This document shows, one piece after another, positions 11,136 to 51,092 of a DNA stretch of 64,000 nucleotides. Location of the stretch: positions 1-64,000 of the forward strand of contig JAHDYR010000025.1 in NCBI GenBank assembly GCA_019828565.1, read 5' to 3'. The DNA comes from Carpediemonas membranifera BICM. Taxonomy: Eukaryota; Protista; Fornicata. Position 1 is the first letter of the stretch. Every line of letters starts with the position of its first letter. Made by a program: the position numbers and the translations under genes. Below the pieces are notes generated by a model. It saw only the letters and a list, made by a program, of their open reading frames with translations, ran no database searches and had not been told where the DNA came from.

Positions 11136-11250
11136 GGCGCCAGGATGAGGGCGCCAGGGATGATGCGCCAGGATGAGGGCGCCAGGATGAGGGCGCCAGG
11201 GATGAGGCGCCAGGGATGAGGCGCCAGGATGAGGGCGCCAGGGATGAGGA
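11136..11250. repeat. GGCGCCAGG(G)ATGA tandem array
   Basis: Directly visible. Confidence 0.9.
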
Positions 11251-21286: not shown

Positions 21287-21347
21287 TGTCATAAGGCATC
21301 CACGTCCGCAGTTTATGTAAATGTTCCAATCTCTTCGCCCCGGCACA
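21287..21347 (+). repeat. 5' LTR (61 bp)
   Basis: TGTCATAAGG...CCGGCACA, identical to 25809-25869. Confidence 0.92.
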
Positions 21348-21363
21348 GTGATCACTTTCCGAA

Positions 21364-25816: not shown

Positions 25817-25869
25817 GGCATCCACGTCCGCAGTTTATGTAAATGTTCCAATCTCTTCGCCCCGGCACA
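25809..25869 (+). repeat. 3' LTR (61 bp)
   Basis: Identical to the 5' LTR; contains the pol stop codon. Confidence 0.92.
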
Positions 25870-26219
25870 GTGGTATTCGAATTTCAGAATTTCGGCATGT
25901 CCGAATTCCGAGGCAAGCGGGTAGGGTGTACAAAACCTGGCCTGGGTCCCTACTGGAGCTAATAGATAACAGTATCACCGTGTATTCGGTTTTCAGAAAT
26001 ATAACTTGTGTTGGTATTGCTATTTCAGAATTACTTCCAGTCCAGGAGATTGTCTTAGAATTTGGATGTTCATGACTACTTTAAAATTTTAAAAAGTTCC
26101 CATGAACCCACTCCAGCTCAGGATTGCGGATCTGAGCCAAGTTTAGGTCGAATCCAAGTATTTGATAATTTTGTATGTACGAAATTCTGAAATTGCAATA
26201 CCAACAGAAAACTCGTGAT

Positions 26220-26435: not shown

Positions 26436-26503
26436 CATACTGTCTCCGGGGGGGGTGAGGTACCCACCTCGAATGGGTACCTTACCCATGGGTAAGGTAC
26501 CCA
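26436..26503 (+). repeat. Left TIR of the C element
   Basis: CATACTGTCTCCG8TGAGGTACC...; ends in the perfect 30 bp palindrome TGGGTACCTTACCCATGGGTAAGGTACCCA. Confidence 0.95.
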
Positions 26504-28238: not shown

Positions 28239-29168
28239 TTATTTCTCCATCTGCGAGTTAAGCCAGGCCACTGCCTTTCCCGTCAGATATACCTTACGCG
28301 TGTCGTGCGCCTTCTTTGTTGCTCTTGCGGCCGAAGCATCAACAGTGGCCTGCTTCAACAAATCTCGGCAGCTAGACTTCGGCGTCTTGGTGCCACGTCG
28401 CGTGCAGGCCCACTCTCTATCGTCCACAGACTCACCACACACAACGCATGACCCTGCGAATACGGTCGGTGGCTTCTCCTTCAGCTTCTGTCGAAGCAGA
28501 TCGCACATCGCGGTCTTGACGACGCGTCGAGATAATTCATCCGTGCGCAGGGTACTAACAGGCTCAACCAACAGCTCTGTCTGAGTAGACGCCTCCTCTA
28601 GGTCTCGCACAGTCTGAGTCTCTGCATGCTCACCCTGTGGCGAAAACTGCTGGCATTTTCCCACCATCCTCGGCTTATCAGGATCAGGACCCAGCGCAGT
28701 CATGTAAACAGGCACCTCAACCCGCTTCTCGACTATCTTGACAGGCTGGGAGCCCCTGCGGGAAGGGGCTTGCGGGTGAACTCGCGTCCTGGTCGGCCCC
28801 CCGTTCGCCTCGTTGTGCAGAGCCTCCATGAAGGCATTGAAGCCGTCATCACGGCCCACCTTCTGTGTCACAAACGACATGACGCATGTGACCGACATCT
28901 CAAAGGATGCAAAATCGTCAGCACTGGAAACATCGCGATTGTGGCAGATTGAGTTTCGAGCTGCCAACAGCTCGCGTATATGTCTCTTATCAGCGTGGTG
29001 AAGATCAGGAACACGATGTAGGATCGCTTGCAAAAGCATAGCCGGATCCATCTCGCCACCGTCACCACGGTACCTCGCGATGTACTCCTGCAGCTTCGGA
29101 ATCATCCTCAGTAGCGCTTCAAACATCATGCTGGCGTATCCTGCTGAATCCTTCGCCCCAGAGCTCAT
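28239..29168 (-). CDS. Swt1-like HEPN-domain protein with Cys-containing C-terminus
   Basis: Helical N-terminus with D-x-x-x-LL and an Rx4H motif (ARNSICH); CVVC near the C-terminus. Confidence 0.6.
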   Translation of the reverse strand: MSSGAKDSAGYASMMFEALLRMIPKLQEYIARYRGDGGEMDPAMLLQAILHRVPDLHHADKRHIRELLAARNSICHNRDVSSADDFASFEMSVTCVMSFVTQKVGRDDGFNAFMEALHNEANGGPTRTRVHPQAPSRRGSQPVKIVEKRVEVPVYMTALGPDPDKPRMVGKCQQFSPQGEHAETQTVRDLEEASTQTELLVEPVSTLRTDELSRRVVKTAMCDLLRQKLKEKPPTVFAGSCVVCGESVDDREWACTRRGTKTPKSSCRDLLKQATVDASAARATKKAHDTRKVYLTGKAVAWLNSQMEK

Positions 29169-29484
29169 ATCGGTTTCTTCAGAACGAAATTCTAAAGAAA
29201 TGTTCGCGGGTATGCCTGATCATCGCGCGTCGAAAGACAGCAGGAACGTACCCTACAGCTCAGGTTGAAGTAGGCTTGGCTTTGGTTCAACTGATAAATG
29301 CGCCATTGCTCCGTTTATATCATCCAATGTTAGGATGCCTTGCTATGATGATATACCGGTCACTACGCTTCTGGGCGACGGTGGAGGCTGATGGTATGGC
29401 AGCGCAGGGGCATGAAGCGGGTCAGAGGGGTGGGTAGTCAAGGGATACTGACCGATCTTGGAACTTGGATGATCGTTGTCGTGG

Positions 29485-29655
29485 CCAGATGAACTTGAGG
29501 CAGTGGTGGAGGAGGAACTCGCGGTCCGTGTGGGGCAGGGTCTCGCCGACGATGAAGGCCATGGAAGAGGCGGCCTGGGTCATCGAAGGGACCTTGACGG
29601 GGTCAGCCCAGTTGTAGTAGAGGTGGGAGGCGTTGTACGCGAATGAGGCGACGTC
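29485..29655 (-). pseudogene. Captured PIWI-domain C-terminal fragment
   Basis: Manual translation DVASFAYNASHLYYNWADPVKVPSMTQAASSMAFIVGETL...LKFIW matches the PIWI-clade pattern HLYYNWxGxxRVPAPCQYAHKLAFLVG. It is not in the ORF track. Confidence 0.75.
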
Positions 29656-30176
29656 ACCACTCCCTACAACGGCGCCAGGATGTGGTCAAGGGGGAATTTG
29701 CACTGAGTCACGTCGAACTGGTTGCGGGCGACGTTGTTATCGTGACGGTGAAAGAGTGAGGGGATCGGTCTGCCCCCGCCGCTCTCTCCATGGCACTCTC
29801 CCCCGTGCGCCACCCCTGATCACTACGTCTGGACCACTATTCTTCCACGGCGTTCTCTCCCTGGCGTTCTCATAGGCAATCTTCTTCTTGCCTTCCTGAT
29901 GTTGATATTAATTGTTTCTGTGTACACAAGCTTGCTAATGTCATTATAAGCTTCACGTAGTACTAAATCGTCTTGTATTCCCGGTATTATCGTCCATATG
30001 GCTGAGCATGAATAATGATGTTGATTACAAAGGAGGGAGAAGCTGGTAGTGGCTCTAGAGCAGACAACGTTCAATGTGCAGCACGCATAGAACAACAATC
30101 CCCTGAATATTACTGTAACTGATCATTCCACGGATTTCGTTTGCGACAGCGATCGCAAAATTGTGCACTTTATGGC
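29633..30176. repeat. ~545 bp dispersed unit, copy 1 of 4 (others 33540-34083, 35654-36197, inverted 41407-41952)
   Basis: Near-identical copies, each ending in GTGCACTTTAYGGC; 29131-30176 is duplicated as a block at 35154-36197. Confidence 0.95.
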
Positions 30177-30320
30177 ACGTCGAGAGACGGCAGAAACATA
30201 CCCTACAGCTCAGGTTGGCTCAACTGTTAATGTGCTCGTGGTCCGTGTGGGACACAGGGTCTTGCAGACCATAAAGTCCAGGGATGATGCGGGCTGTGGG
30301 TTCAGTTTTATTCATTCCGT

Positions 30321-31679
30321 CTACAGCATATTCAGCAATGTAAGCTTGTCCTTCTGTTGCACACGTATCTCACCACACCGCTTACACTCAGTGAACACTC
30401 CACCAGGACCAGGGAGGCGACTCGGTATGTGTATCTCCGTCGCGCAACAGGTGCTGCAATACCAGTGTCTGCATGCGTCACAGAAGGCTGCATTCGCGAC
30501 GTCTTGAGGCGGCTCCTCGACATTGGCTGACAGTGTAGTGGCACAGCCCCAGCATCGCCAGACACCGTCATTGTCATAACGGCGATCGCAGTCTGAACAG
30601 ACAAAGTTGATGTGGTCGAAGGTGGATCGCTTATGGTAAGGACACACGCAACTTATGTGAAAGCATGTCTTACAGATGGTACACTGCGCAAAAGCTTCGT
30701 CCGAATCAGCATCTGCCCAGTCCAACGAATGACACACACCGCAACCGTGAATGATGGCAATGTCTCTCGCCACGATAGGGTCGGCACGAGCAATCTCCTT
30801 GGCTGCCTGAATTTGGGCTATCTTGTCCGCAACAGCAGCATTGACAATCTCGCGAACCTCAGTCGTCTCGAAATGTATGGCGGCACCCGATACAGTTCGT
30901 TTGGGCGTTGCGCGTCTGTACGTTGTGCTTCCCGGCGACATGGCATCTTCCGGAGAGTCGCTCTGGGAAGCGATCTTACTCGAGTCATCTGGCAGCTCCT
31001 CTAACTTCTCTCGCTTGACCGGTAGGTCTGACTGGCTCACAGAGGAGCGTGGATCGGTGAACATCTCTGTCTTCGGGGCAGCTGCGGATAATGCAACAGG
31101 CTGGACGTCAGCCGCACGGATGATGCTTGTCGACCGATGGGCAGGCACGTTCACGTCGAACCGCACTGCAACTCCTTTGTCCTCCATCACCCATGAAGAG
31201 ACGAGGTCATAGATGGCGTTCATGGCTGAAGTCCGGGCGCTATAGCGGACGAAAACGCCGGAAACATCATTGTCACCATTAAATCTGCTTGAAATGGCGA
31301 CTTTGTATCTTACGCCCTTGTGTATGGTCTTGTCTAGGCCGAAGTCGATGAGTGCCTCCCTAAGTGCGCTACCTGATACATAAGATTTTGCAAAACCTTC
31401 CTCGTCGCCACTGCTGTTCTTCCCTGGGAGGCGTTGCTTCAGCTGGAGTTGAACGATCTTTGGGTGACATTCAAACACCACTGACAGGTTCTGTAGGAAG
31501 TTGCCAAAGGAATTCCATATGGCTCGGTGTTTCGTCCCTTCCTGCTTCCCTGTGAGGAATTCCTCGTTCGCAACGTAGCAGAATGCGTTCAGATAGAGCC
31601 GAAGAAGCTTCTTTCGGCGCCCAGAAACCGTATTCTTCGTTCCCATCAGCAGCGCTTGATCGTCATAAAGTGCACGCAC
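30321..31679 (-). CDS. PHD-finger protein with a second Cys-rich finger
   Basis: CGVC...CTICKTCFHISC...CSDC (C4HC3), then CWGC...CDAC..WYCSTC...CKRC; start codon uncertain. Confidence 0.75.
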   Translation of the reverse strand: MRALYDDQALLMGTKNTVSGRRKKLLRLYLNAFCYVANEEFLTGKQEGTKHRAIWNSFGNFLQNLSVVFECHPKIVQLQLKQRLPGKNSSGDEEGFAKSYVSGSALREALIDFGLDKTIHKGVRYKVAISSRFNGDNDVSGVFVRYSARTSAMNAIYDLVSSWVMEDKGVAVRFDVNVPAHRSTSIIRAADVQPVALSAAAPKTEMFTDPRSSVSQSDLPVKREKLEELPDDSSKIASQSDSPEDAMSPGSTTYRRATPKRTVSGAAIHFETTEVREIVNAAVADKIAQIQAAKEIARADPIVARDIAIIHGCGVCHSLDWADADSDEAFAQCTICKTCFHISCVCPYHKRSTFDHINFVCSDCDRRYDNDGVWRCWGCATTLSANVEEPPQDVANAAFCDACRHWYCSTCCATEIHIPSRLPGPGGVFTECKRCGEIRVQQKDKLTLLNML

Positions 31680-31748
31680 AATATCTCAGGGGGATCTTCC
31701 TGCTGGGCTGGCTAAGACCGGGTAGCACATCTTCACGACAGATCGACT

Positions 31749-32831
31749 TTATTCATTGTCCTCGTCAGCAGCCAGACGCTTCTCGCCCTCCGTAATCAAT
31801 GCCTTTCTTATGACCGGATCCTTATCATCGGGACGTTCGGGTAAGCCGAACACGCGGCGAAGGAGGTTGCGATTATCAGCTGTCTGCAAGCTGGTGATAA
31901 ACTTGTTGACTGTCGGGAGCATATCCTGCCTCTCTGGTGCATCCTCATCAAGCTTCCGGAATGTCAGGGCGAAAGAGATGCATTTCTGCGCGTGAGTGAT
32001 TTTCAGCGGCACAGCCTCATGAGAGAGCATCTGGCAGAACTCGGTTGGGTACAGAATGATATACTCAAATATATCACGCTGTTTGTCCAGCGACCGCTCT
32101 TTCTTTCCTGACATCTCCGCCATACGTGTCATCATGTGCTTGATTCCACCGCTAGGTCGAGAGCTGAGGGCACCAGGCTTCTTCAGTTCCACTCGCAGTG
32201 CGTCTGCCTGATGCTCAAGCTGAGCGGCGGAACAATCACTGCCTGCCATCTTGTAAATCGCCAGATGATACGCGATATACACTTGCCACATGGTCTGTGG
32301 ACCCGAGTTAACAGTCAAAATGGACTGGAGTGCATGAAGCTGCTCCACCGTCGGGTGCTCAGCTGCGTCCAGGGAGACGATGGTCCAATCATCAGACTGT
32401 TCGTTCGACCTGTCAATCGAACCACTCCAGGTCTTGGACAAGATCGTGTCAACATCATAGCACGACAAGTCATTCTTCCGCTTGTGATGCTTTGCGGCGG
32501 CGTCTTGGTCAGCGGGAAGGACAGTCTGGCCAGCGGGTGAGCCATCGCCTTGGACAGCGGGTGAGCCATCGCCTTGGACAGCGGGAGGGCCATCGCCTTG
32601 GACAGCGGGAGGGCCATCGCCTTGGCCAGCGGGAGGGCCATCGCCTTGGCCGGGGGGACGCTGATCAGTGGCGAAATGAAGACGAGCGTCATCGTCAGAG
32701 GCGTTCAAAGCGCGTGAAGCGCTGATGGCGTCCATGAGAACTATTTTGAACTCCTTCTTGAACGTCTGCGTCCGCTTGTTCTTAGGAATGGCGTAAAGCA
32801 TTGCCATAAGCTCTGAAGTGTCGAAATCCAT
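31749..32831 (-). CDS. Hypothetical protein with 24 bp (QGDGPPAV-type) repeats
   Basis: 360 aa ATG-initiated ORF; repeat at ~32527-32655. Confidence 0.6.
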   Translation of the reverse strand: MDFDTSELMAMLYAIPKNKRTQTFKKEFKIVLMDAISASRALNASDDDARLHFATDQRPPGQGDGPPAGQGDGPPAVQGDGPPAVQGDGSPAVQGDGSPAGQTVLPADQDAAAKHHKRKNDLSCYDVDTILSKTWSGSIDRSNEQSDDWTIVSLDAAEHPTVEQLHALQSILTVNSGPQTMWQVYIAYHLAIYKMAGSDCSAAQLEHQADALRVELKKPGALSSRPSGGIKHMMTRMAEMSGKKERSLDKQRDIFEYIILYPTEFCQMLSHEAVPLKITHAQKCISFALTFRKLDEDAPERQDMLPTVNKFITSLQTADNRNLLRRVFGLPERPDDKDPVIRKALITEGEKRLAADEDNE

Positions 32832-32860
32832 CGAAATGTTCTCGTGCAGATTTTGTCAGA

Positions 32861-33529
32861 ATGCGACTGACCACGAAGGAGACGTATACGATGCCAAGTG
32901 ATGACTATTGTCGTCTCTACAGCAGCAAGATCTTTACTGAGTTCAGTACCGATTGTTCTGCGTTTGGCTTTTCGAGATCGATGCTTGCTAACAAGTGTGA
33001 CATCAACGTGGACGAGAACGGCTTCAGTACTGCAGTTTCCGTCACTCAAGAAGAGCAATACTCCCTTATGGGAACTTCCGTTGGCAATGGGGTCATGGTG
33101 ATGTCCCCAATTGAGAAAGGCACCATCATCGGAGCGTACCGTGGTGAGATCGTCTCGACGCCGGGCCCCACAGCGGATTCGACCTATGTCATGTCCTTCT
33201 CGCAGAAGCTTGAGTATCACGTCGACTCCAGCGGTCTTCAGTATGGCTGTCACCTTATCAACGACGGCATGGGCTTCTACAACTGTGATGCCCACACGTA
33301 TCTCGTCTCCGTCATGGTGGATGACAAAGCCGTGAAACTGCCAATCCTCGTCATTGCGGCTACAGCCGATATCAAGCCGATGGAGTTCCTCTCCATTGAA
33401 TACGGCGATGACTACTGGCGCGGTAAGAAGCGTGTTACTCTCTTCCCCTTCTCCATGGGTCGTATGTGCTCTGCAACGACTAGCCGTGAAGAGATGGAGG
33501 CTGTCGTTGACAATGTGCTCGGTTTATAA
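32861..33529 (+). CDS. Stand-alone SET-domain lysine methyltransferase-like protein
   Basis: GNGV...IEKGTIIGAYRGE, HLIND...NC and ATADIKPMEFLSIEYGDDYW. Confidence 0.85.
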   Translation: MRLTTKETYTMPSDDYCRLYSSKIFTEFSTDCSAFGFSRSMLANKCDINVDENGFSTAVSVTQEEQYSLMGTSVGNGVMVMSPIEKGTIIGAYRGEIVSTPGPTADSTYVMSFSQKLEYHVDSSGLQYGCHLINDGMGFYNCDAHTYLVSVMVDDKAVKLPILVIAATADIKPMEFLSIEYGDDYWRGKKRVTLFPFSMGRMCSATTSREEMEAVVDNVLGL

Positions 33530-34104
33530 ACGCTCCTTGTTGTACGCGAATGAGGCGACGTCACCACTCCCTACAACGGCGCCAGGATGTGGTCAAGGGG
33601 GAATTTGCACTGAGTCACGTCGAACTGGTTGCGGGCGACGTTGTTATCGTGACGGTGAAAGAGTGAGGGGATCGGTCTGCCCCCGCCGCTCTCTCCATGG
33701 CACTCTCCCCCGTGCGCCACCCCTGATCACTACGTCTGGACCACTATTCTTCCACGGCGTTCTCTCCCTGGCGTTCTCATAGGCAATCTTCTTCTTGCCT
33801 TCCTGATGTTGATATTAATTGTTTCTGTGTACACAAGCTTGCTAATGTCATTATAAGCTTCACGTAGTACTAAATCGTCTTGTATTCCCGGTATTATCGT
33901 CCATATGGCTGAGCATGAATAATGATGTTGATTACAAAGGAGGGAGAAGCTGGTAGTGGCTCTAGAGCAGACAACGTTAAATGTGCAGCACGCATAGAAC
34001 AACAGTCCCCTGAATATTACTGTAACTGATCATTCCACGGATTTCGTTTGCGACAGCGATCGCAAAATTGTGCACTTTACGGCTGACAACAGAGAATCGT
34101 CTGC

Positions 34105-34893
34105 ATGTACGAAAAAGTCGCGTATTCACTTGCTGCTATGCATGCCATGACAAGATATAAGATTGCACCTGAGGAGGTGAAGAATTCTCATCGCCAATGC
34201 GTCAAGGACGCTGTTCTCGAAGCCTGGCTCTCATCTTCGGCTGGTTTCAAGTGGGCAACAACTCTGATTGACGAATTGAGCGCTGCATACAAAGGCTCAA
34301 TCACATACAACCTCCAGAGCCTTCTCTTCAGCGTTTTCCCCGAGGAAATGACGGACCCGCGTGCAACGAACGACATACTGCGTGTGCATAAGCTGCTTGG
34401 CCCAATCATAGGGCAGACCGTCTTCTTGGCCTCCATCTGCAAGACTGATAGCATCTCCATCACGCGCGATCACTTCATGTCTGTGTCCTCACCCGTGCCT
34501 TTGTCATTGGATGATCGCAGAGCCGCATACGTGGCTCATACCTTCCCGAGTGTCTGGTCGACACTGGTCGAGGCCCTGATGATCGGCAGCATCGACCAGG
34601 CGATCTTTGCTGATATCTGCCTCGCCATTTTCGAGGCTCCCGATCCGCAGTTCGCCGACACGAAGAAATATGCGCAGCTGACTGATACCTGTCTCTCGTA
34701 CGCAGTGGAGAGTGTTACTGACAGGGATACTGAGCATAACAGCTGTAAGGTGAAGTGGTTCGGTTACCCCATCCCGACCTCTGCTCCGCTGTCCGAGTAC
34801 AAGCAGTTTACGAATGAGACTCATGTGTCGAAGCGTGGCAGAGGTGTAGACAGTGGTTTTGTTGGGAAGGGACGCAGACTGAACCAGAAATAA
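34105..34893 (+). CDS. Hypothetical protein
   Basis: 262 aa ATG-initiated ORF starting 24 bp after a GTGCACTTTACG motif; no recognised domain. Confidence 0.55.
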   Translation: MYEKVAYSLAAMHAMTRYKIAPEEVKNSHRQCVKDAVLEAWLSSSAGFKWATTLIDELSAAYKGSITYNLQSLLFSVFPEEMTDPRATNDILRVHKLLGPIIGQTVFLASICKTDSISITRDHFMSVSSPVPLSLDDRRAAYVAHTFPSVWSTLVEALMIGSIDQAIFADICLAIFEAPDPQFADTKKYAQLTDTCLSYAVESVTDRDTEHNSCKVKWFGYPIPTSAPLSEYKQFTNETHVSKRGRGVDSGFVGKGRRLNQK

Positions 34894-35502
34894 ACCATTT
34901 TGGGTGTGATACCGGCTTTGCTTCGCTTTGGCCGCCAGCGCCATCGTGAGTCATGACCTCCTGGCGGATGGCAGTCTCGACGGGAGCTTGAATGCCTCGA
35001 GGTAGCCCTGATCCCCAACCTAATGCGAAGACGTGCAACCCGGCGGTAGCCAGCCGGAGCTGAGCCGAAAGTTGCCATCTAGATGCCCCGACGGAGTGTA
35101 CGGTGGTTCGTGAGGCGACTGTTCCCCTCATGCCGTCCATATAGGCATCCGCGCTGGCGTATCCTGCTGAATCCTTCGCCCCAGAGCTCATATCGGTTTC
35201 TTCAGAACGAAATTCTAAAGAAATGTTCGCGGGTATGCCTGATCATCGCGCGTCGAAAGACAGCAGGAACGTACCCTACAGCTCAGGTTGAAGTAGGCTT
35301 GGCTTTGGTTCAACTGATAAATGCGCCATTGCTCCGTTTATATCATCCAATGTTAGGATGCCTTGCTATGATGATATACCGGTCACTACGCTTCTGGGCG
35401 ACGGTGGAGGCTGATGGTATGGCAGCGCAGGGGCATGAAGCGGGTCAGAGGGGTGGGTAGTCAAGGGATACTGACCGATCTTGGAACTTGGATGATCGTT
35501 GA

Positions 35503-35676
35503 GAACCAGATGAACTTGAGGCAGTGGTGGAGGAGGAACTCGCGGTCCGTGTGGGGCAGGGTCTCGCCGACGATGAAGGCCATGGAAGAGGCGGCCTGGG
35601 TCATCGAAGGGACCTTGACGGGGTCAGCCCAGTTGTAGTAGAGGTGGGAGGCGTTGTACGCGAATGAGGCGACGTC
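35503..35676 (-). pseudogene. Second copy of the PIWI C-terminal fragment
   Basis: Same as 29485-29655, ending ...HHCLKFIWF. Confidence 0.75.
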
Positions 35677-36371
35677 ACCACTCCCTACAACGGCGCCAGG
35701 ATGTGGTCAAGGGGGAATTTGCACTGAGTCACGTCGAACTGGTTGCGGGCGACGTTGTTATCGTGACGGTGAAAGAGTGAGGGGATCGGTCTGCCCCCGC
35801 CGCTCTCTCCATGGCACTCTCCCCCGTGCGCCACCCCTGATCACTACGTCTGGACCACTATTCTTCCACGGCGTTCTCTCCCTGGCGTTCTCATAGGCAA
35901 TCTTCTTCTTGCCTTCCTGATGTTGATATTAATTGTTTCTGTGTACACAAGCTTGCTAATGTCATTATAAGCTTCACGTAGTACTAAATCGTCTTGTATT
36001 CCCGGTATTATCGTCCATATGGCTGAGCATGAATAATGATGTTGATTACAAAGGAGGGAGAAGCTGGTAGTGGCTCTAGAGCAGACAACGTTCAATGTGC
36101 AGCACACATAGAACAACAATCCCCTGAATATTACTGTAACTGATCATTCCACGGATTTCGTTTGCGACAGCGATCGCAAAATTGTGCACTTTACGGCCGA
36201 CTGCCTGGGAAGGTATCGACTCGAAAGGATAGGGGCGTCTCTGTCTACCCTCACAGATGAATAAATGAATGTATATATGCCTGTCTGGGCATCAGCGCTG
36301 TCGTTCAGGCCAATCTCGCTCGCAACCGAGCTTGAAGCAACGTCGACTCCTTTTGTCAATTTACTCATTAC

Positions 36372-38223
36372 TCACTCGCTCGCCGTCTCCAGTTTGCTCA
36401 CACCGGAGTATACTGCGGCGTGCTCACCCTCAATCAGAATAACGCCATCGAAGTCCGACTCATGACAGGCCTTGACGACAGCAGCGCGGCTTCTCAGTGT
36501 CATCTTCTTGATGCGGCCACTCGCCATGTGTAGAACCGCATCGCTTATCCAATGGCCTTGCTTTTTTGCGTTGTCAATGACGAGCACGGTCTTCTTGTTG
36601 GCGTGTGCCCATGTCCGTATGGCTTCTGTCGTGAGGTACAGGCTCTTCTTATCGAAAAGCTCGTCGGGCTCGAACCAAGTGCCGTGGAATACGACTGACT
36701 TCTTCGCCCACGCGGTCAGTCTCGCTCTGAAACCGGCAATGGCGTTATCGTCCAAGTCCGTGTTGTGAACAAGGTAGTGAAGGGCGTGTGCGATGCAACT
36801 CCCATCTGGAGGCACGTTGTGTACATCACAGAAGCGCTTGATGTCTGCCATTGCACGAAGGTTGTCATAGCCTCTCTCAGGCTCAGGCTCAGCTGGCTCG
36901 CTGACGCTAAGATCTATGATATCAGCACACGGCACACACTCTTTGTTGTTGGCCTTCTCGGGCTCCGTCTGGGTGTTGGCTTCGCATGTCTTCACTGTCT
37001 TCACCTCCGACTCGCCCTTCTTCTCATTTGCCTCACCCTCGTCCTCCTTCTCCTCAGGCTCATCATGCACCTCTGTCACCTCCTCTACCTCGCCCTCCTC
37101 CTCCTCGTCTGACTCCTCTGAGTTGCTATCGACATCAGCGATCTTCTGAGGGATTGTCATGAGGGCCTTGCGCTTCATGTGGATTGTGTCGCTCTTCCCC
37201 GTACGGCGGGGGGTACTCGTTCGTGCTTGGTGTGTGCCCGACTGGGGTAGGTCGCGGCGAAACGGCGCGGGTGTCGGGCTGGCACCGATGGAGATGTCAG
37301 CTGCGTATCCCACGTCTTGCAGCAGCCTCGTGACGGTCTCCTCCAGCTCGAGTACTCTCTTCTGCGCCTTGTGATGGAGCACTCGTGCCTCCATCGGAAG
37401 AGATGGGAGGTCTTTGTGAATCCAGTCCTTCATTTCGAGCAGCTTGGATACGCGAAGGTATCTGTCGAACTGAACGTCGACGTGGTTGTCCCCAGCAACC
37501 GCAGCTGACTCTCGAGAGGCGCGAATGCGAAGCTCGCCGTGCACCTCCTTCTGGACTCTATGCCACAGGACGTAGTTGCGAGCGTTATTGTCCTCCCACT
37601 CCTTGAGCTTCTGGGCGATCTTTCTCTCGCGCCGGCGCTTGATCGCGCGTTCTCTAATCTCATCGTCGGACTCGTTGTCAAAGTCCACCTCACTCTCACT
37701 GTCGCACAACTCAGAATCGTCGACGCCGCTCTCTTCACCACTGTCCACGCCACTCTCATCGTCGACGGGTTCTTTCTTAGCGCTCTCGGCCTTGCCCTTG
37801 CCCTTGTCCTTCTCCTCGGCGTCAATGGCCTCAATAATGGCCTTACGCGCCTTGCGCTTCTCCTGGCTATACACGATATCAGCCTGGTTGTCGTCAACCC
37901 ACTTCGCCAGCGCGCCGAGCTTCTTGGAACTTCTTGGTCCTGCGAGTGCCATAAACTGCTTCTTCAACTTATCCTGGAGCTCTTCCTTCTCGTCCTTCGT
38001 GAGGCGGAATTTCGTAGTGATATGGTTCAGGTTGATTCCTATATAAGCATTGCTATGACTACAAACGCTTCCTGATCACTAGATCGAGCAGTTTCCGTTC
38101 ATCCAGCAAAACCGCGCGAAGGACAGCACATTTGGCATGATTGGTGGTTGCCTTGGTGTATGCAGCCAATATCGCATCGTACTGTTCCTTGCTAGCGCTC
38201 TCAATCCACTTTAGCAAGTCCAT
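36372..38223 (-). CDS. Two-exon OTU-like cysteine protease protein, paralogue of 14888-16655
   Basis: Exon 1 38223-38067 and 28 nt intron 38066-38039 splice in frame into ORF 36372-37967; VPPDGSCIAHAL and EGEHAAVY. Confidence 0.8.
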
Positions 38224-39472
38224 GTTCGGCACTATCAGCAAGAGAGCATAAAAAAATGGACATAGAGTGCCAAAAGTAATAAACTGAAACCATCCTCACG
38301 GCAACTATGTACCTAGGCGGCCTCAGTACCTCCAATACCTTCCGTATGTGCTTTTTTTGTCCGTCCCTACTTCGTCCCACGAACCAGAAAAAAGCGCAAA
38401 GAGAGGGCCCTTTGAATAATTCTATAACGGCAGCAGAGCATAAAACACGGTTCGAAAGGGCTGATTTTATGCTCTCTTGCCGTTAGTTCAAGCCGAGGCA
38501 CGCTTCGGGCGAGCTCCGGCCAAGGTGTCCAGGAGTCAGCTTTTGGGGGAAGGTCTGTGGTGCTCTAACGTACCTCGGGACGCACTGTGGAGGCCCCTAG
38601 AGTACTCGGTCATGGCATGTCAGACCAAGGGTCCCTCAAATCTGGCCCCATTCAGGATGCACCCCCTAAATGTTCCGTTGCAAGCGTCTGACGGGCGTTC
38701 TCTGGATACCGACCAAGATGGAGGTCACATGGATCAACGGACGAGTATTGCGGTATTCTGGCCATGCCTGGTACTCTCAAATCATCTATACTGCTCAGTG
38801 GTTCATTTATTGTTCATATCGTATGGTCCTGATGGACTTATGATGATTGATGTTGTTTAGGGATTATTGTTGCTTTAGTGATGCTCTGCGCCCGCCAACT
38901 GATGTTTCTTAGTGTTGTGTACATGCCTACTACGTTAAAGCCGCCAGTATTCTTTCTATTCTTAAGTTCGCCATTTCAATCTCGTTGCGAGCATAAAATG
39001 CACATTGTGAAAGGAAAGTGGGTGGTTATCTAATGGATACAGGGCAGGACAAGGTACACAAATGCCGTCCTGAGGTTTGGCATGGGATACTGATTTCATA
39101 CGTCTAAAATGGGCGGTTGGACCCGAATTTCAGAATTTCGGCATGTCCGAATTCCGAGGCAAGCGGGTAGGGTGTACAAAACCTGGCCTGGGTACCTATT
39201 AGAGCGAATAGAGAATGGCAGCACCATGGATTCGGTTTTCAGAATAATAATTGCATTTGGATCGCCATTTCAGAATTACTTCCAGCACCGGAGATTATCA
39301 TTAAATCTGGGAGTGTAACAACACTTTTAAAAAATGAAAGGTCCCCATTCACCCACTCAGGCCCTAGATCACGTATCTGAGCTCAGTTTGGGTCAATTCC
39401 CAATACTTTAGAGTTTTGTATGGTCGAAATTCTGAAATAGCAATCCAAACTGAAGCAGCAAAAACTCATCCC

Positions 39473-40834
39473 ATGGAGGCTGTAGCGGCAATAGACGAAG
39501 ATATCATGAAGCATTGGTTGAAGAATGTTCCAACCAAATCGCGTACGAACTACAACAAGCTTCTGAAAGACGTTTTGGCCAGAATTTGTCAGGAAACCGC
39601 CACAGATATCCAGAAGGGCATCGAGATTGTCCGTAGTGACGAGCTGGTAACCCATTTGCGCCGGTACCTCGCTGAGAAGCCTCTGGGGACGCAGAAGAAG
39701 ATCGTTTCGGCTGTTCAGTCTTTCCGGAACTTCGACTTGCCACACCCCGCGAAGCCGTTGTCCTGGAAAGAGGAGAAAGAGGTGTCGCCTGCATCAGTTG
39801 AGAGTCTCCCCAGCCCGTATGGCGCCATTGCCATTCTGCTCAACCAGACGGGCTGGGAGTATTCGTATCTCCAAGGTAATCTCCCCGATGCGATAGACCT
39901 TACCTCGTGCCCGAGCTGGATGGGCTTTGGCACGCTCAAATCGGGATTCCCGCAGGCCAGTGCTGTATCGGAGGCGCTCAAGGTTCAGGGGTTGACGGTT
40001 CGCATGCTTCGCTTTGCGCAGCGGATCGACGTGTCCACCGATAGGATGCAGTCTATCGGCACGCTAGAGCGCCGCGGCAGACCGCAGGAGAAGCCTCAGA
40101 AGGTCATTAAGGACAAGCGCATCAGCCTGACCGATGAGCAGTTCAGGCATCAGTTGGCGTCCAGTCACTTAACGACCACGCGGCGCCCAACGATCCTCGA
40201 TCTCAACCCGGAGATCCGAAGCTCTGCCGACCTGGTGCCGCCGACGCTCGATGACTGGCTTTACAAAAAGCTCAGGATGAGGATGGTCCAGCTCCACGAC
40301 CAGCGTAAGCCCGAGGGGGGCGACACGGGAGAGGGCGAGTCTGACGATGAGGCGCTGTTTGACGAGACAGCTGGCGAGGCAGAGATGCCGGAGACCGTGG
40401 TGGAGGGCGAGTTTGACGAGACAGCCGGGTTGGAGATGCTGGAAGGAGAGTGGGAGGATGAGGAGAGTTCAGACAGCGATGCCGAGGATAGCCTCGTCGA
40501 TAACCTGTCATTTCTTCAGTCACAACAGGTTGAGTGTGATATGTCTGAGAGAGATACCGATGAGGGTGTCCGTAGCGGGGCCAATGGAAGTGGGCTCGCT
40601 CCGCTCTATGACTCTATGAAGACCAGGGTGCCCAGCAGACGCATTCGCCTTCGCCGCTATCACGAGAGCGAGTCAGACTTGGGTAGCAGCAGCGACAGCG
40701 AGGACGGGATGCCGAAGCTGCCCGATGAGGCCTTTCAGCACATCCGTGATGCCGGAATGACAACTGTGAGGCTGACGAGGGCCGAGTATGACGGCGTGAT
40801 GGAGAAGAGAGAGCAGGAAAAGCATCAGAAGTAA
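39473..40834 (+). CDS. Intact YR-like/acidic-tail protein
   Basis: Uninterrupted ORF; SRTNY, IVSAVQSF, ILLNQTGWE and VRMLRF; C-terminal half nearly identical to 12381-13115. Confidence 0.65.
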   Translation: MEAVAAIDEDIMKHWLKNVPTKSRTNYNKLLKDVLARICQETATDIQKGIEIVRSDELVTHLRRYLAEKPLGTQKKIVSAVQSFRNFDLPHPAKPLSWKEEKEVSPASVESLPSPYGAIAILLNQTGWEYSYLQGNLPDAIDLTSCPSWMGFGTLKSGFPQASAVSEALKVQGLTVRMLRFAQRIDVSTDRMQSIGTLERRGRPQEKPQKVIKDKRISLTDEQFRHQLASSHLTTTRRPTILDLNPEIRSSADLVPPTLDDWLYKKLRMRMVQLHDQRKPEGGDTGEGESDDEALFDETAGEAEMPETVVEGEFDETAGLEMLEGEWEDEESSDSDAEDSLVDNLSFLQSQQVECDMSERDTDEGVRSGANGSGLAPLYDSMKTRVPSRRIRLRRYHESESDLGSSSDSEDGMPKLPDEAFQHIRDAGMTTVRLTRAEYDGVMEKREQEKHQK

Positions 40835-41065
40835 ATGAACGAAGTAAATATGTCGTGGGAATGACTCAAACACTGACTAAGCCATCGAATTGGCGCAGCT
40901 GACCCCATATTGTTGTTAAATGACCACAAAGCATTCGCTTATGCACAATTAGCTGCCAGAAAGAACACTACCGTTACTTTGGATCATTCCAGTTCGCCGG
41001 AGATGACGCAGGTCCAGAACGCTGCCTTGGAGGGCTGGTGAAGCGGTAGTGTAGCGCTTACTCAC

Positions 41066-41239
41066 CAAGCGGGCGATGGTCTCGACGGGACGGTTGACGG
41101 TCTTAAGGTGGCCCTGCTCTTCGACGTACCAGGCGGACATGCCGATGACGGAGCGGCGCTGACCCTGGCGGACGTTATCCTCGCCCTGGGTGAAGCTGTT
41201 CTTGCTGAAGTACACGTGGATACCGATGGTGAGGCAGGG
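41066..41239 (-). pseudogene. Captured PIWI-domain N-terminal fragment (exon-like)
   Basis: PCLTIGIHVYF...RRSVIGMSA resembles PIWI MVVGIDVYH...RSVAGFVAS; 174 nt flanked by CTACAG and GTGAGT. Confidence 0.6.
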
Positions 41240-42119
41240 CTGTAGCATGGAGGCCGAGAAACCATAAACTGCACGGATCCACAAACGTGGATTGGCCTGA
41301 ACGACAGCGCTGATGCCCAGACAGGCATATATACATTCATTTATTCATCTGTGAGGTAGACAGAGACGCCCCTATCCTTTCGAGTCGATACCTTCCCAGG
41401 CAGTCGGCCGTAAAGTGCACAATTTTGCGATCGCTGTCGCAAACGAAATCCGTGGAATGATCAGTTACAGTAATATTCAGGGGATTGTTGTTCTATGTGT
41501 GCTGCACATTGAACGTTGTCTGCTCTAGAGCCACTACCAGCTTCTCCCTCCTTTGTAATCAACATCATTATTCATGCTCAGCCATATGGACGATAATACC
41601 GGGAATACAAGACGATTTAGTACTACGTGAAGCTTATAATGACATTAGCAAGCTTGTGTACACAGAAACAATTAATATCAACATCAGGAAGGCAAGAAGA
41701 AGATTGCCTATGAGAACGCCAGGGAGAGAACGCCGTGGAAGAATAGTGGTCCAGACGTAGTGATCAGGGGGTGGCGCACGGGGGAGAGTGCCATGGAGAG
41801 AGCGGCGGGGGCAGACCGATCCCCTCACTCTTTCACCGTCACGATAACAACGTCGCCCGCAACCAGTTCGACGTGACTCAGTGCAAATTCCCCCTTGACC
41901 ACATCCTGGCGCCGTTGTAGGGAGTGGTGACGTCGCCTCATTCGCGTACAACAAGGAGCGTTTATAAACCGAGCACATTGTCAACGACAGCCTCCATCTC
42001 TTCACGGCCAGTCGTTGCATGCATAGCAGCAAGTGAATACGCGACGTTTTCGTGCATGCAGACGATTCTCTGTTGTCAGCCGTAAAGTGCACAATTTTGC
42101 GATCGCTGTCGCAAACGAA

Positions 42120-43712
42120 ATGAGCAGCGCTAGTTCATATGAGTACACCAAGGACCTATTTATAGCGTCTTTCCGGCTCTGTTTCCATAGAACACTGACA
42201 ATCCCCGGGGATATACCCTCAATCCTCAAACTCGCCTTTTTCAACCACTTCGACGAAGAAATGCCCTCGAGTGTGGCTTTTGAGATCCCCAACAGAGCAA
42301 GTGTTGATGTTGTCCAAATTAGCTTTGCAGAGCGCCAAATGATGGAAGCCATACTGTCAATGATTCCCCCTCTCAAACCATCCGCGCAAGCCCTCCTCGA
42401 CTGCGCCCGCTCCATCCTCACAGACGGCCCCCCGCTTTCCATGAACATCCCATTGGCTCCAGGTCAGGAGCTCCCCGTTGCCCTTCACACGCTCAACCAG
42501 GGCGCGGTGTGGGCGTGTCTGATGGGTGCTGGGGCCAACCCAGACCTCGAGGACATGGTTCTGAGGCGGTGTCAGAGCCAAGGCCCAGGCGAAATCGAGA
42601 TGCACAGCAAGATCCGCCGCATTTTCACTCCAGACGACAAGTGTCTCTGGTTCCTCTGCCGCAAGTTCCACTTCTCGCTGAACGTCGCCGAGAAGGACGG
42701 TGAGAGCTTTCAGTGCAATGCGTACGATAGATGCTACCACCACCGCATGTACATGGGCCGACTCTTCATGCTCGACACTGAGCACCACGCCGCCCTCACC
42801 AGGGCCAGAATGCCCAGGGCCCTCAAGGTTTTCAGCGATGATTCCACCCAGATCGCCAAGACGCCCAAGGGCCTGTGGGCCTGGGGCAAATGCCATCGGA
42901 ATGACAAATCCAGGTTCTCTGCCCCGTTCCGCCTCACCTTCCCCGAATGCCCCAGAGTATCCCACCTCGAGGCCAGCCTGCCCCCCTGGGAGAAGCACAG
43001 GATGGTGGTCGATGTATCACTATGGGCAATAGAGGCCTTTATACTCACCCCTGTCGGCACTATCGAATCAAGAGGGCCTGGGAACGTCTTCAAAGTCGCT
43101 TTGCCGACAGGATTTGTTCCTGATCACATCCTACATGGATTTAAGACAACTATCCTCTCCATGGGCGATCGTCAAATGATAAGCGGTTGGAACGGCTGTG
43201 GACGGTTGGGTCTTGGGCACAAGAAGAAGCTTTCTGGCTTCATTGACCTTCCCCATCCGGTGGAACAGATCATATTTTGCGATTATAACAACTTTAGCAT
43301 CTTCGAGAGTGACAACCGATTGCTATTTGCTGGCAGAGTTCCTGAATACCTTGAATCGTTTGTTGATTTGTATGAGGGCGAGAAATGCGTCACACCAACC
43401 CATATAGAGCTGCCATATCTGCGGACGAAAGGATTCTTCGCCGGGGAGGCGTGGGTCATCTGGGTCACTGAAGGCAAGAGTTATGTCTCGTGCAATTTTG
43501 GTGGCTTAGACAAGTTTTATGTCCCCTTTGAGGCCAGATATGCTTCCATAGATGGCGATCTAGTCGAGAAACCTGCTGATGGCTGCAAATTCTGCAATTC
43601 AGCCGGCCAATGGCTCGAAGTAGTGCGCGTGGCTTCCTTCGTGGCCGAGATGCGTGAGTGTGAGTCGCCCAGAGGTGTTGAAGTTGACACGATCGATAAT
43701 GTAAAGACGTAA
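42120..43712 (+). CDS. RCC1-like beta-propeller repeat protein
   Basis: GLWAWG, ISGWNGCGRLGLG and LLFAG RCC1-type repeats. Confidence 0.7.
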   Translation: MSSASSYEYTKDLFIASFRLCFHRTLTIPGDIPSILKLAFFNHFDEEMPSSVAFEIPNRASVDVVQISFAERQMMEAILSMIPPLKPSAQALLDCARSILTDGPPLSMNIPLAPGQELPVALHTLNQGAVWACLMGAGANPDLEDMVLRRCQSQGPGEIEMHSKIRRIFTPDDKCLWFLCRKFHFSLNVAEKDGESFQCNAYDRCYHHRMYMGRLFMLDTEHHAALTRARMPRALKVFSDDSTQIAKTPKGLWAWGKCHRNDKSRFSAPFRLTFPECPRVSHLEASLPPWEKHRMVVDVSLWAIEAFILTPVGTIESRGPGNVFKVALPTGFVPDHILHGFKTTILSMGDRQMISGWNGCGRLGLGHKKKLSGFIDLPHPVEQIIFCDYNNFSIFESDNRLLFAGRVPEYLESFVDLYEGEKCVTPTHIELPYLRTKGFFAGEAWVIWVTEGKSYVSCNFGGLDKFYVPFEARYASIDGDLVEKPADGCKFCNSAGQWLEVVRVASFVAEMRECESPRGVEVDTIDNVKT

Positions 43713-43726
43713 AGCTAAGTATTTCT

Positions 43727-46468
43727 GTGATGACGAATTCTCTGATAACGTGGGTTCTCGGGAATCTTGTCGTCTCATTCCCGCCTGATACGACCGGTGA
43801 CCACATATGTTGCGCCATATACTCGCATCTCTTCTCCTCTCGTCTCCCAGGCTTCAATAAGAGAAAGATACACGAAGAAAACGTATTCCAGCACGCCATC
43901 CGGGAATTGGGCAGCATGAGGAACGATATAAGCCAATGTTTCACCAGCAACGTGAAGAACGATTGGAAGCGTGCAGTCCAAAGGATGACTTCTTCCAACC
44001 TTGTCACAGTTCATCCAGTCAACGACGAAGTTGAACGTTTGCGTGCCCGCGTTCAGGAGCTAGAGAAGCAATTGCGTGACACGACCTGCTTGCTGGACAT
44101 GATGAGCTCGCTGAACGCCATTCTGTCCGGCAAGAACAACGATACGGCATTCCACTCGATGTTCAACAGCTTTGCGAGTCGGCTGGGACTAGACACGATA
44201 GGAAGGACTCAGAAGCGCCGGGAGCCGATTGCCGGGCTGGACATGAGCATACTCAATATCCCAGGCCTTCGCGAGGCACTGTCGGAGGAGGAGGTGGCCG
44301 ATCTGTCTTGCTTCATTCCCGTGGAGTATGCCATCCAAGAGGCTGGCGTCACAGTCACAGCTGACAGCTCCAGGCTGACTGTCCCTATCGGTCAGACCGT
44401 CAATTTCATTGGTTCGCAGGAGCTCATTGACGCAACCGTGGAACGTCTGCAGCTCACCCCGACTGACACTGTCCGCTTTGGCCAGACAACCAAGCTACTA
44501 TATGCAGACGCGATAGATGCGAAACAGGCACGTGATACTGTCCGGGCCGACAGGATTCATAGACGGCAGGGACTTCGCTCTACAATTATTTCCCCCAACC
44601 CCTGGGATTTTGTTAGTTCGGTTTTCTTTGACTGTGAGGCCATATGCACCTCGGTCCTTCTTCGTCCGATGGCATTTGTTGCCGATAAGCCTGCTCGGAA
44701 GACATGTCTGGAGGTATGCGCAAAGGACGACGAAGTTGAGGCTGGCAGGGTCTTCAACCTTGAGTTGTGCCTGTGGGTTGACGGCTGGAAGCATGGAACT
44801 ACTGCAGTTAAGTTCAGGCTTGGTGACAAGGAGGGCATTGCCATTCCTGGGAAGTTGACCCGGGTCTTCACACTCTTGGAGTTCATCGGCCACGAGGACC
44901 AAATTCCATCTTTGTACCCCCGTATTGCTGCGGAGATCAGTAACTTGGTTAACCTCCACTTCTGTGTCCGGCAGACTGGCGCTATTGCCCAAATTTGCCG
45001 CGTCCATACCCTGGCCGACAACAAGGCTCTCCAAGTTCTGCTCGGAACCATGCGCGGCGGCAAGAACAGGTGTGTGTTTTCTGTTCTCAGTGATTCAGAG
45101 TTCATTTCCAACCCGTATGGATTCAGTACCATACGCGATCGTATCGCCGCTGCCAACCCACAGTACAAGGTCATCTCTGTGCAGTTATCCGACCTACTCC
45201 TCCGCCGACAGATGTACTACGCGGCACAAAAGCAAGAGATTGATCATCTGAGCAGTACACTGGGCCCAGGCAGACGAGTGAGGATCAAAGAGAAGGATCG
45301 GATCACCTTGGATCTTCAACACCGGTACGGTAAGTACAAGTGGGATGAGAATCAGTTCATCCCTCTGTTCCAGGACAGCCCTGCTCTTGCCGAGTTGACA
45401 ACAGTCGCCCCGCCGCTGATGCACACCAGCCATGAGCTCCTTGAGCAAGTCGCGTGTCTGGTTAAGATGTTTCCACAACCACCACGCAACCCAGAACTCT
45501 CTTTCTGGCGTCAGCAGAGCGGCAATACTGAGTTCGTCAGAACAGTTGGCTGCAACGAGCAAGAGAGAGCTCGTGCAAGACTGGCAGTCCTGGCTACCTC
45601 ACATATCACGTGTGTGCCAGAGTGTGTGAGAGAGCTTTTCCGTGTCATCGCTCACCTCCAGCATCTTTACTACTCGATGGAGGACCCGACCCCTGAGCTG
45701 ATCCGCTGGCATTGGGTCGCCGCCGCAGTCATACACGCGTTCCACACCGCAATGAGCATCTGCCCTGATGGCTCATACCGCACCAAGACCAAGAGTGCGG
45801 AAATGAAGAAGCCTTGTGTCATAACCCTTAAGATGCACGCTGCCGTTGCAGTCATTCCGTTGATCCATCAGGAGACTATGCTCCCTCTGACGTTCATGCT
45901 GGAGGAACATTTTGAGCGATCATTCCTGCCCAACATGGAGATGAAGCAACGCGCTCAGAGAGCTCGAATTCTGCATCTCGTCAGTCTGATGTCCCAGGCG
46001 AAGTACATCAAGCGTGCGTTGCTGAGGACTGAGTCCGCTGGCAGGAGACAGCACAGCATTCCGGCGCTGGGAACACTTGTTGCCATGCATGTACATGAGT
46101 GCGTGAAGAGTGCCCAGATGTGGAAGAAGGTGCGCGGAATGAGTGTGGATCCATTGGAGAACGCAGGTCTAGACCAGCTGAAACGTGATCTCACCACGTT
46201 CTGGCGAACATTCGACTCGAGAATGGCACAGGATGTGATGACATGCCAGGTAGTCTGGGACGATGGTATGCTGCACTGCCAGTTACCAAAGCGCACGGAA
46301 CCGCGTAATCCCGTGGAAATCACGGTATGTATATGCGAACATTTGGGAGCTGGTCACGATTCGTCTGATGACGAGGCTTATCGCCCAGGGAAGTCGAGGA
46401 AGAGTGCCAAGAAACGGAAACAGCCTACTATTCCGTCATTTGGTGGGTTCCAGCCAGACAATGAGTAA
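43727..46468 (+). CDS. DDE transposase of the CMC (CACTA/Mirage/Chapaev)-Transib-RAG1 group, 913 aa
   Basis: Ordered motifs LWVDG, LADNKAL..LLG......RC, PPLMH, TLKMH and LEEHFER; intact ORF located inside the TIRs. Confidence 0.75.
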   Translation: MMTNSLITWVLGNLVVSFPPDTTGDHICCAIYSHLFSSRLPGFNKRKIHEENVFQHAIRELGSMRNDISQCFTSNVKNDWKRAVQRMTSSNLVTVHPVNDEVERLRARVQELEKQLRDTTCLLDMMSSLNAILSGKNNDTAFHSMFNSFASRLGLDTIGRTQKRREPIAGLDMSILNIPGLREALSEEEVADLSCFIPVEYAIQEAGVTVTADSSRLTVPIGQTVNFIGSQELIDATVERLQLTPTDTVRFGQTTKLLYADAIDAKQARDTVRADRIHRRQGLRSTIISPNPWDFVSSVFFDCEAICTSVLLRPMAFVADKPARKTCLEVCAKDDEVEAGRVFNLELCLWVDGWKHGTTAVKFRLGDKEGIAIPGKLTRVFTLLEFIGHEDQIPSLYPRIAAEISNLVNLHFCVRQTGAIAQICRVHTLADNKALQVLLGTMRGGKNRCVFSVLSDSEFISNPYGFSTIRDRIAAANPQYKVISVQLSDLLLRRQMYYAAQKQEIDHLSSTLGPGRRVRIKEKDRITLDLQHRYGKYKWDENQFIPLFQDSPALAELTTVAPPLMHTSHELLEQVACLVKMFPQPPRNPELSFWRQQSGNTEFVRTVGCNEQERARARLAVLATSHITCVPECVRELFRVIAHLQHLYYSMEDPTPELIRWHWVAAAVIHAFHTAMSICPDGSYRTKTKSAEMKKPCVITLKMHAAVAVIPLIHQETMLPLTFMLEEHFERSFLPNMEMKQRAQRARILHLVSLMSQAKYIKRALLRTESAGRRQHSIPALGTLVAMHVHECVKSAQMWKKVRGMSVDPLENAGLDQLKRDLTTFWRTFDSRMAQDVMTCQVVWDDGMLHCQLPKRTEPRNPVEITVCICEHLGAGHDSSDDEAYRPGKSRKSAKKRKQPTIPSFGGFQPDNE

Positions 46469-47501: not shown

Positions 47502-47569
47502 TGGGTACCTTACCCATGGGTAAGGTACCCATTCGAGGTGGGTACCTCACCCCCCCCGGAGACAGTATG
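47502..47569 (-). repeat. Right TIR of the C element
   Basis: Exact reverse complement of 26436-26503. Confidence 0.95.
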
Positions 47570-47571
47570 CT

Positions 47572-48716
47572 ATGGCTAAGAGGATCGTTTCGGCTGTTCA
47601 GTCTTTCCGGAACTTCGACTTGCCACACCCCGCGAAGCCGTTGTCCTGGAAAGAGGAGAAAGAGGTGTCGCCTGCATCAGTTGAGAGTCTCCCCAGCCCG
47701 TATGGCGCCATTGCCATTCTGCTCAACCAGACGGGCTGGGAGTATTCGTATCTCCAAGGTAATCTCCCCGATGCGATAGACCTTACCTCGTGCCCGAGCT
47801 GGATGGGCTTTGGCACGCTCAAATCGGGATTCCCGCAGGCCAGTGCTGTATCGGAGGCGCTCAAGGTTCAGGGGTTGACGGTTCGCATGCTTCGCTTGTC
47901 GCAGCGGATCAACGTGTCCACCGATAGGATGCAGTCTATCGGCACGCTAGAGCGCCGCGGCAGACCGCGGGAGAAGCCTCAGAAGGTCATTAAGGACAAG
48001 CGCATCAGCCTGACCGATGAGCAGTTCAGGCATCAGTTGGCGTCCAGTCACTTAACGACCACGCGGCGCCCAACGATCCTCGATCTCAACCCGGAGATCC
48101 GAAGCTCTGCCGACCTGGTGCCGCCGACGCTCGATGACTGGCTTTACAAAAAGCTCAGGATGAGGATGGTCCAGCTCCACGACCAGCGTAAGCCCGAGGG
48201 GGCGACACGGGAGAGGGCGAGTCTGACGATGAGGCGCTGTTTGACGAGACAGCTGGCGAGGCAGAGATGCCGGAGACCGTGGTGGAGGGCGAGTTTGACG
48301 AGACAGCCGGGTTGGAGATGCTGGAAGGAGAGTGGGAGGATGAGGAGAGTTCAGACAGCGATGCCGAGGATAGCCTCGTCGATAACCTGTCATTTCTTCA
48401 GTCACAACAGGTTGAGTGTGATATGTCTGAGAGAGATACCGATGAGGGTGTCCGTAGCGGGGCCAATGGAAGTGGGCTCGCTCCGCTCTATGACGCTATG
48501 AAGACCAGGGAGCCCAGCAGACGCATTCGCCTTCGCCGCTATCACGAGAGCGAGTCAGACTTGGGTAGCAGCAGCGACAGCGAGGACGGGATGCCGAAGC
48601 TGCCCATTGAAGCCTTTGAGCACATCCGTGATGCCGGGATGACAACTGTGAGGCTGACGAGGGCCGAGTATGACGACCTGATGGAGAAGAGAGAGCAGGA
48701 AAAGCATCAGAAGTAA
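47572..48716 (+). pseudogene. 3' part of the interrupted YR-like gene
   Basis: Nearly identical to 39700-40834; frameshift in the G-run near 48197. Confidence 0.8.
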
Positions 48717-51018: not shown

Positions 51019-51092
51019 TGACTTAAAGTCAAGTTTTGTCCTTGACTTTAAGTCACAAAAACTTGACTTGAAGTCAAGGAATTGACAGTATG
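51019..51092 (-). repeat. TIR, B-type end
   Basis: Reverse complement of 9592-9665; ~47980-51092 is an inverted homologue of 9592-13115. Confidence 0.9.

Follow-up and report, generated by a model that had tools for sequence, protein, structure and literature searches.

Pieces of one host PIWI gene are carried by giant DNA transposons in Carpediemonas membranifera

Why would a transposon carry pieces of a host PIWI gene? The question is raised by the first 64,000 nucleotides of contig C13 of Carpediemonas membranifera, a free-living, unicellular and culturable metamonad (assembly of 24.24 Mb in 69 contigs). This whole stretch, C13:1-64000, is referred to below as the window, and its open reading frame (ORF) 43727-46468 was matched by identity to J8273_6729 of this species. 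A word search of the text of the genome paper (PMC8516963) showed that the words PIWI, Dicer, RNAi and 'transposable' are absent from it. A first-pass annotation had proposed that a transposon captured fragments of a host PIWI gene here, and this proposal stood, since an intact donor gene (P1) was found and the pieces lie inside an element, E1, bounded by terminal inverted repeats (TIRs) and a target-site duplication (TSD). The spacers of E1 hold five kinds of piece in nine places, all from P1.

The TIRs of E1 are perfect over 68 bp and start CATACTGTC, the TSD is 2 bp long (CT in the window, GG in the copy on contig C42), and the empty insertion site is kept on contig C6. Four copies were found, on C13, C42, C67 (truncated where the contig ends) and C34 (4 kb), and those on C42 and C67 carry the same PIWI pieces. 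The modules of E1 are common to many other elements, with 270 candidate matches for 11 kb of its length, and one module is common to E1 and a second family, E2, which ends in CATGCTGTC (CATGCTG, as against CATACTG in E1). When the 11 kb was searched for other host donors, the matches were saturated by element copies. The element and its boundaries are as follows.

26436-47569, no strand: 21.1-kb DNA transposon E1, with TIR, TSD, empty site and four genome copies.
26436-26503, plus strand: left TIR, 68 bp.
47502-47569, minus strand: right TIR, 68 bp.
38553-41329, no strand: module common to E1 and E2, carrying piece A, 91-98% identical to C6:1378529-1381516.

The PIWI pieces in the window, together with a 545-bp unit beside which several of them stand, were placed as follows.

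29487-29655, minus strand: piece B, copy 1, host codons 768-823, up to the host stop codon; 90.5% identity over 169 nt, no gaps, E 1e-62.
35508-35676, minus strand: piece B, copy 2, identical to copy 1.
41069-41254, minus strand: piece A, host codons 562-623; 88.7% over 186 nt, no gaps, E 6e-65.
29390-29460, minus strand: piece D, copy 1, host codons ~548-571; 79%, E 4e-9; nhmmer E 6e-5.
35413-35483, minus strand: piece D, copy 2.
34933-35013, minus strand: piece E, host codons ~607-633; 78%, E 3e-11.
30235-30296, minus strand: piece F, host codons ~794-813; 77%, E 7e-6.
33539-33562, minus strand: first 24 nt of piece B, at a 545-bp unit end.
41929-41952, plus strand: stub of piece B, its first 24 nt, where the inverted 545-bp unit ends.
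414-470, plus strand: piece G, in another repeat outside E1, host codons ~537-556; 80%, E 6e-7; also on C18.
29632-30176, no strand: 545-bp unit, copy 1, 99.5% identity between copies.
33539-34083 and 35653-36197, and inverted at 41407-41952: other copies of the 545-bp unit.

The two C-terminal fragments on the minus strand that had been reported before are both copies of piece B, whose translation matches positions 265-300 of the Pfam Piwi model (E 7e-4). The fragment taken for N-terminal is likewise a PIWI piece on the minus strand (piece A), but it is 15 nt longer than described and encodes residues 562-623, where the PIWI domain begins, and not the protein N-terminus. That list was also incomplete, as two copies of D, one each of E and F, and two 24-nt stubs of B lie inside E1, with G outside it. 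The proximity to the 545-bp unit was borne out, with B overlapping the unit end by 24 nt and A lying ~150 nt from another copy. Piece D follows B after 27 nt, which breaks gene order. Piece E stands ~40 nt 3′ of the stop codon of ORF 34105-34893, antisense, and is followed by D and B; piece A comes 235 nt after ORF 39416-40834; the B stub at 33539-33562 begins 10 nt past the stop codon of the SET-domain ORF, antisense; and in the E2 family piece C comes 109 nt after a gene. Read-through would thus be antisense to P1 for E/D/B, for A, for the SET-side B stub and for C of E2, and piece F is sense, 25 nt past the stop codon of the PHD ORF. No hairpin precursor was found around the pieces, which are linear and without a hairpin of their own.

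The genome holds two intact Piwi-domain genes, P1 (contig C7, 823 aa) and P2 (contig C65, 801 aa), each a single open frame. P1 matches the Pfam Piwi model with E 7e-38, and its best PDB match is sponge Piwi. The donor of the pieces is P1, since P2 matches far less well, with only 80% over 115 nt to piece B. A third, unassembled PIWI gene as donor found no support, because the protein search gave P1 and P2 alone and the assembly is 99.27% complete and likely haploid (PMC8516963). A lost paralogue or another strain is a possible source. No close orthologue was found in the protein search. P1 has Ser796 at the position of the fourth catalytic His of sponge Piwi and so presents neither a DEDH nor a DEDD tetrad, and P2 retains His there and with it all four catalytic residues. 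The sampled paralogue is therefore, by its residues, likely non-slicing. The genome further contains one gene for an RNA-dependent RNA polymerase (RdRP; 1180-codon frame, C6).

The intact genes also allowed the catalytic and splice-site claims of the first-pass annotation to be judged. The supposed change of YAH to AAS is no change at all, as intact P1 itself reads TQAASS, and the change of GID to GIH is real in two of seven copies, with GID kept in the other five; loss of catalytic residues specific to the fragments was accordingly rejected. The AG/GT borders of piece A fell away as well. Homology to P1 runs 15 nt beyond the AG, which sits in a Gln codon common to the host, and the GT is GC in five of seven copies. 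Since P1 is moreover a single 823-codon open frame, capture of an exon bounded by splice sites is ruled out.

Across the genome, at least 92 places carry such pieces. No fewer than nine kinds can be told apart, and they sit in at least two related families of element, whose termini differ. Genome match tables gave at least 39 places for A (83 candidates, of which 40 were scored), seven each for B and C, four for I, 17 for H and one for a 40-nt stub. Counts for D, E, F and G come from retrieved loci (seven, five, three and two places, respectively), since short, decayed sequence of the D or G type escapes the genome search. For piece I and the E2 left end, the match tables are the only source. 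Every piece falls within P1 positions 1624-2487, i.e., the last 870 nt, which run from the last part of the MID domain through the PIWI domain. Identity to P1 is 89-91% for A, B and I and 77-81% for C to H; indels against P1 are present in all of C to H and absent from A and B. The lengths of A, B, C and I are 169-214 nt. Breakpoints coincide, with I and H ending where B starts and B and C both ending at the stop codon. Piece A is in frame within a 135-codon Met-initiated ORF in five E2 copies (including L024:3760-4163, minus strand). An assembly artefact is ruled out by the different flanks, the target duplications and the fixed differences among copies.

The sampling is strongly non-random and is specific to P1 among the genes tested, so the enrichment of PIWI among captured fragments that had been suggested for checking proved strongly positive within the limits of the controls (about six host genes; a control region that proved to be a repeat was dropped). 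In 228 kb of repeats, nhmmer gave 38 hits with the 3′ third of P1, 21 cross-hits with the matching part of P2, and none with 14 of 15 other controls, the remaining one giving a single hit with E 0.03. In a short-word search the controls scored at most 34 and the named pieces 51-282, the lowest raw score being that of piece F. Genome searches with the first 1.6 kb of P1 and two upstream genes revealed no pieces, the only match being a paralogue of a neighbour; the gene downstream of P1 gave no pieces and one full duplicate; the RdRP gene gave no pieces genome-wide; and P2 gave only cross-matches of P1 pieces and one 52-nt match. The duplicate of the downstream gene (L030:2817-3965) is 96% identical, lies at C26:602805-603954, and its match starts 86 nt past the PIWI stop codon.

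We then asked what the differences between pieces and host say about their history. For A and B together, 22 of the 34 differences from P1 are synonymous and 12 non-synonymous, where a neutral piece compared with a constrained host predicts 34-52% synonymous; the excess has P 0.0003-0.09 depending on the mutation model. The host changed after B and C were captured, since the two pieces concur with each other and with P2, but not with P1, at codons 774, 776 and 804. The overlapping pieces B and C have no amino-acid-changing difference from the host in common, a pattern that would result from separate captures or from a split very early on. Neither A nor B has a perfect 21-nt match to P1; in each, identity to P1 runs for 20 nt at most (P 0.04-0.11 for A and 0.06 for B, in a post hoc test), as host escape would give. 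In B and in the C18 copy of A, 60-67% of the 21-nt windows differ from P1 at no more than two positions. Third-position GC content in the captured regions of P1 is no lower than elsewhere. Among the variable sites of the A copies, eight of nine change the amino acid, which weakens a role for A as a peptide.

Capture of silencing genes by transposons has a precedent in Drosophila, where telomeric retrotransposons captured nxf2 (Ellison et al., 2020, PMC7785250) and took piwi or aub repeatedly, with eight of nine captures being piRNA-pathway genes (PMC13534243). The Drosophila captures are 140-235 bp long and 76-95% identical to the host gene (median ~90%), give rise to antisense piRNAs on the host gene, and lie in regions of it that evolve faster; targeting is nearly absent at ~80% identity (PMC13534243), and the two age classes of P1 pieces fit this loss. 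The likeness extends to the size of A, B, C and I (169-214 nt) and the identity of the pieces (77-91%), to the intact host silencing gene as donor, to repeated and specific capture, and to short pieces from several regions that sit in non-coding parts of a mobile element, travel and are amplified with it, and may bear signs of host divergence. Unlike the long interspersed elements of Drosophila, the carriers here are giant cut-and-paste DNA transposons in a metamonad, and the capture covers at least nine regions in ~90 copies over many contigs. Rice CACTA transposons carry miR820, which acts against OsDRM2 (Nosaka et al., 2012, PMC3459959). That case shares with ours a DNA transposon with sequence matching a host silencing gene (small-RNA action being here what we infer), but there a hairpin microRNA is set against a DNA methyltransferase, and here linear coding fragments of 60-210 nt would be set against a PIWI gene. 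In plants, Pack-MULE and Pack-CACTA elements hold host gene pieces, out of order, within their TIRs and sample many genes; here one gene was sampled repeatedly. Counter-defence by capture of piwi pieces has been reported from fruit-fly telomeric retrotransposons, and the literature searches turned up no case of a DNA transposon or a protist in which PIWI sequence was captured.

Donor, capture inside TIR-bounded elements, spread and specificity among the tested genes are observed. As to why the pieces are there, we lean towards the reading that P1 pieces were captured repeatedly and may have been kept because small RNAs from the element would also target P1 mRNA, an effect that we infer from the enrichment and from the Drosophila precedent. 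In this scheme, a family of giant, module-swapping transposons would have taken P1 pieces more than once and stored them in spacers between its own genes; element transcripts, whether from sense or antisense read-through or with the help of the host RdRP, would be processed to small RNAs; those of the ~90%-identical pieces (A, B and I) would pair with P1 mRNA and lower P1, P2 with its intact tetrad being the probable cutter; and lowered P1 would ease the silencing of the carriers, which could then spread. The host RdRP could make the orientation of the pieces unimportant. As P1 drifts at synonymous sites, old pieces would lose their effect and decay (C to H), and newer ones would replace them. 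Only tentatively do we extend this to a standing arms race with P1, with resampling after synonymous drift, pieces traded as modules, slicing of P1 mRNA by P2, and the decayed pieces as earlier rounds. Several results weigh against small-RNA targeting of P1. No match to the Pfam RNase III model and no Dicer was seen genome-wide, a result that carries little weight given how divergent the genome is; the orientation of the pieces is mixed, with an antisense lean that is not callable as significant; the synonymous excess is not significant under strong GC-to-AT mutation bias (P 0.09); the seven copies of A have nine variable sites in 186 positions as against two in 165 in the flanks (P 0.07, in the wrong direction); and the control set is small. 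If repeated capture with targeting of P1 is true, the same strategy arose independently in very distant eukaryotes, with a different element class and the same piece size and identity, and it would be the first genetic sign that PIWI restrains transposons in free-living metamonads, one that also points to which of the two paralogues is involved.

The restriction of all pieces to the 3′ third and the common breakpoints (B and C at the stop codon, I and H at the start of B) would also be explained if one or two 5′-truncated P1 cDNAs of the last 870 nt had entered an ancestral element, been cut up, and hitch-hiked since as cargo without function. The free exchange of modules, the absence of constraint among the copies of A and an ORF of endonuclease/reverse-transcriptase type in the window agree with such an origin. 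We nevertheless regard it as rather unlikely, since nine non-identical pieces of one gene would have to persist in different modules with none from the other tested genes, the pieces fall into two clear age classes (indel-free at 89-91%, indel-bearing at 77-81%), B and C have no fragment-specific change in common, and the sampled gene is a silencing gene, as in eight of nine Drosophila captures. The mixed orientation would be no obstacle if the pieces acted in cis as camouflage, leaving P1 at its level and weakening the silencing of the carrier through likeness to a gene that must be expressed. Such camouflage has been proposed for plant gene capture, going by its citation in PMC13534243; any essential gene would serve, yet P1 alone was sampled among the tested genes, and we consider it improbable here. 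Even less probable is a role of the pieces as templates for decoy peptides or in a host feedback loop that tunes the PIWI level to the transposon load. The frames of A and B are kept and the 135-codon ORF around A speaks for translation, but the amino-acid changes among the A copies, the frameshifts in C to H and the improbable folding of a 62-residue piece of PIWI sheet speak against decoys, and a benefit to the host leaves it unexplained why the pieces ride on recently copied elements.

The class of the carrier was determined from its ends and its transposase, both of which speak against membership in CACTA or MULE. The transposase and the cargo ORFs are as follows.

43727-46468, plus strand: 913-codon transposase with RAG1/Transib-like DDE fold, J8273_6729.
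32861-33529, plus strand: cargo ORF with SET domain, Pfam PF00856 E 2e-5, above cut-off.
30321-31679, minus strand: cargo ORF with PHD-like finger, Pfam PF00628 E 0.01, below cut-off.
28239-29168, minus strand: cargo ORF with weak HEPN-like match, Pfam E 0.006, below cut-off; its module occurs in more than 20 places.

The structural model of the transposase (predicted local distance difference test 74.5) matched RAG1 (E 1.2e-9), ProtoRAG (2.7e-5) and Transib (7.8e-4) in Foldseek, and RAG1 features of the Atlas language model (0.93) are in line with this. Residues D351 and D430 are invariant in 12 relatives, the third acidic residue not being pinned down. There was no match to any Pfam transposase model, nor to TnpD/Transposase_21 at E up to 1, and only 16 relatives, all distant (25-34% identity), were present among 1.8 billion representatives. 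Like CACTA (EnSpm) elements, whose TSDs are 2-3 bp, E1 has 2-bp TSDs (CT, GG), but its termini read CATACTG, and those of E2 CATGCTG, in place of CACTA/CACTG, and TnpD is absent. With Transib and RAG1 it shares the RAG1-core fold with catalytic acidic residues, but neither a 5-bp TSD, which is the TSD length of Transib, nor heptamer ends resembling recombination signal sequences. The CMC group (CACTA, Mirage, Chapaev) has TIRs beginning CA and, as in E1, chromatin-domain cargo, and some of its members make 2-bp TSDs; the ends of E1 and E2, CATAC or CATGC, differ from CACTA or CACAG/CACAA, and E1 is 21 kb long with exchangeable modules. E1 is thus a giant element that moves by cut and paste, carries a RAG-like enzyme and belongs by its ends neither to CACTA nor to Transib; with its CATAC ends and 2-bp TSD, the transposase may represent a transposon group of its own.

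The end of the 545-bp unit is a partly palindromic motif 55 nt 5′ of the ATG of ORF 34105, for which a promoter role is only a candidate. At 35733-35753 (minus strand), and in the other 545-bp units, six of seven encoded residues agree with the host just after catalytic Asp660; third codon positions differ and the match is not significant (E 4.4), so a tenth piece within the unit was rejected. The host codons just after Asp660 are the most A/T-ending run of the P1 gene body.

Two further ORFs of the window have features recognized by eye and without Pfam support, an OTU-like cysteine protease motif (36372-37967) and RCC1-like repeats (42033-43712), and a 75% relative of the latter lies 2.7 kb from P1 on C7. 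Around E1, 3.5-kb inverted repeats at 9592-13116 and 47983-51092, which also start CATACTGTC, enclose E1, a Ty3 element and a 5.2-kb inverted duplicate; they probably delimit a third, nested giant element, and no matching target duplication was seen at them. The Ty3/gypsy retrotransposon (21287-25872; protease, reverse transcriptase, RNase H, integrase and a weak chromodomain match) lies between 64-bp direct repeats. Elsewhere in the genome, a 5.9-kb repeat (L013:1736-7688) is present at 98-100% identity in 13 or more copies of nearly full length, alongside numerous partial ones.

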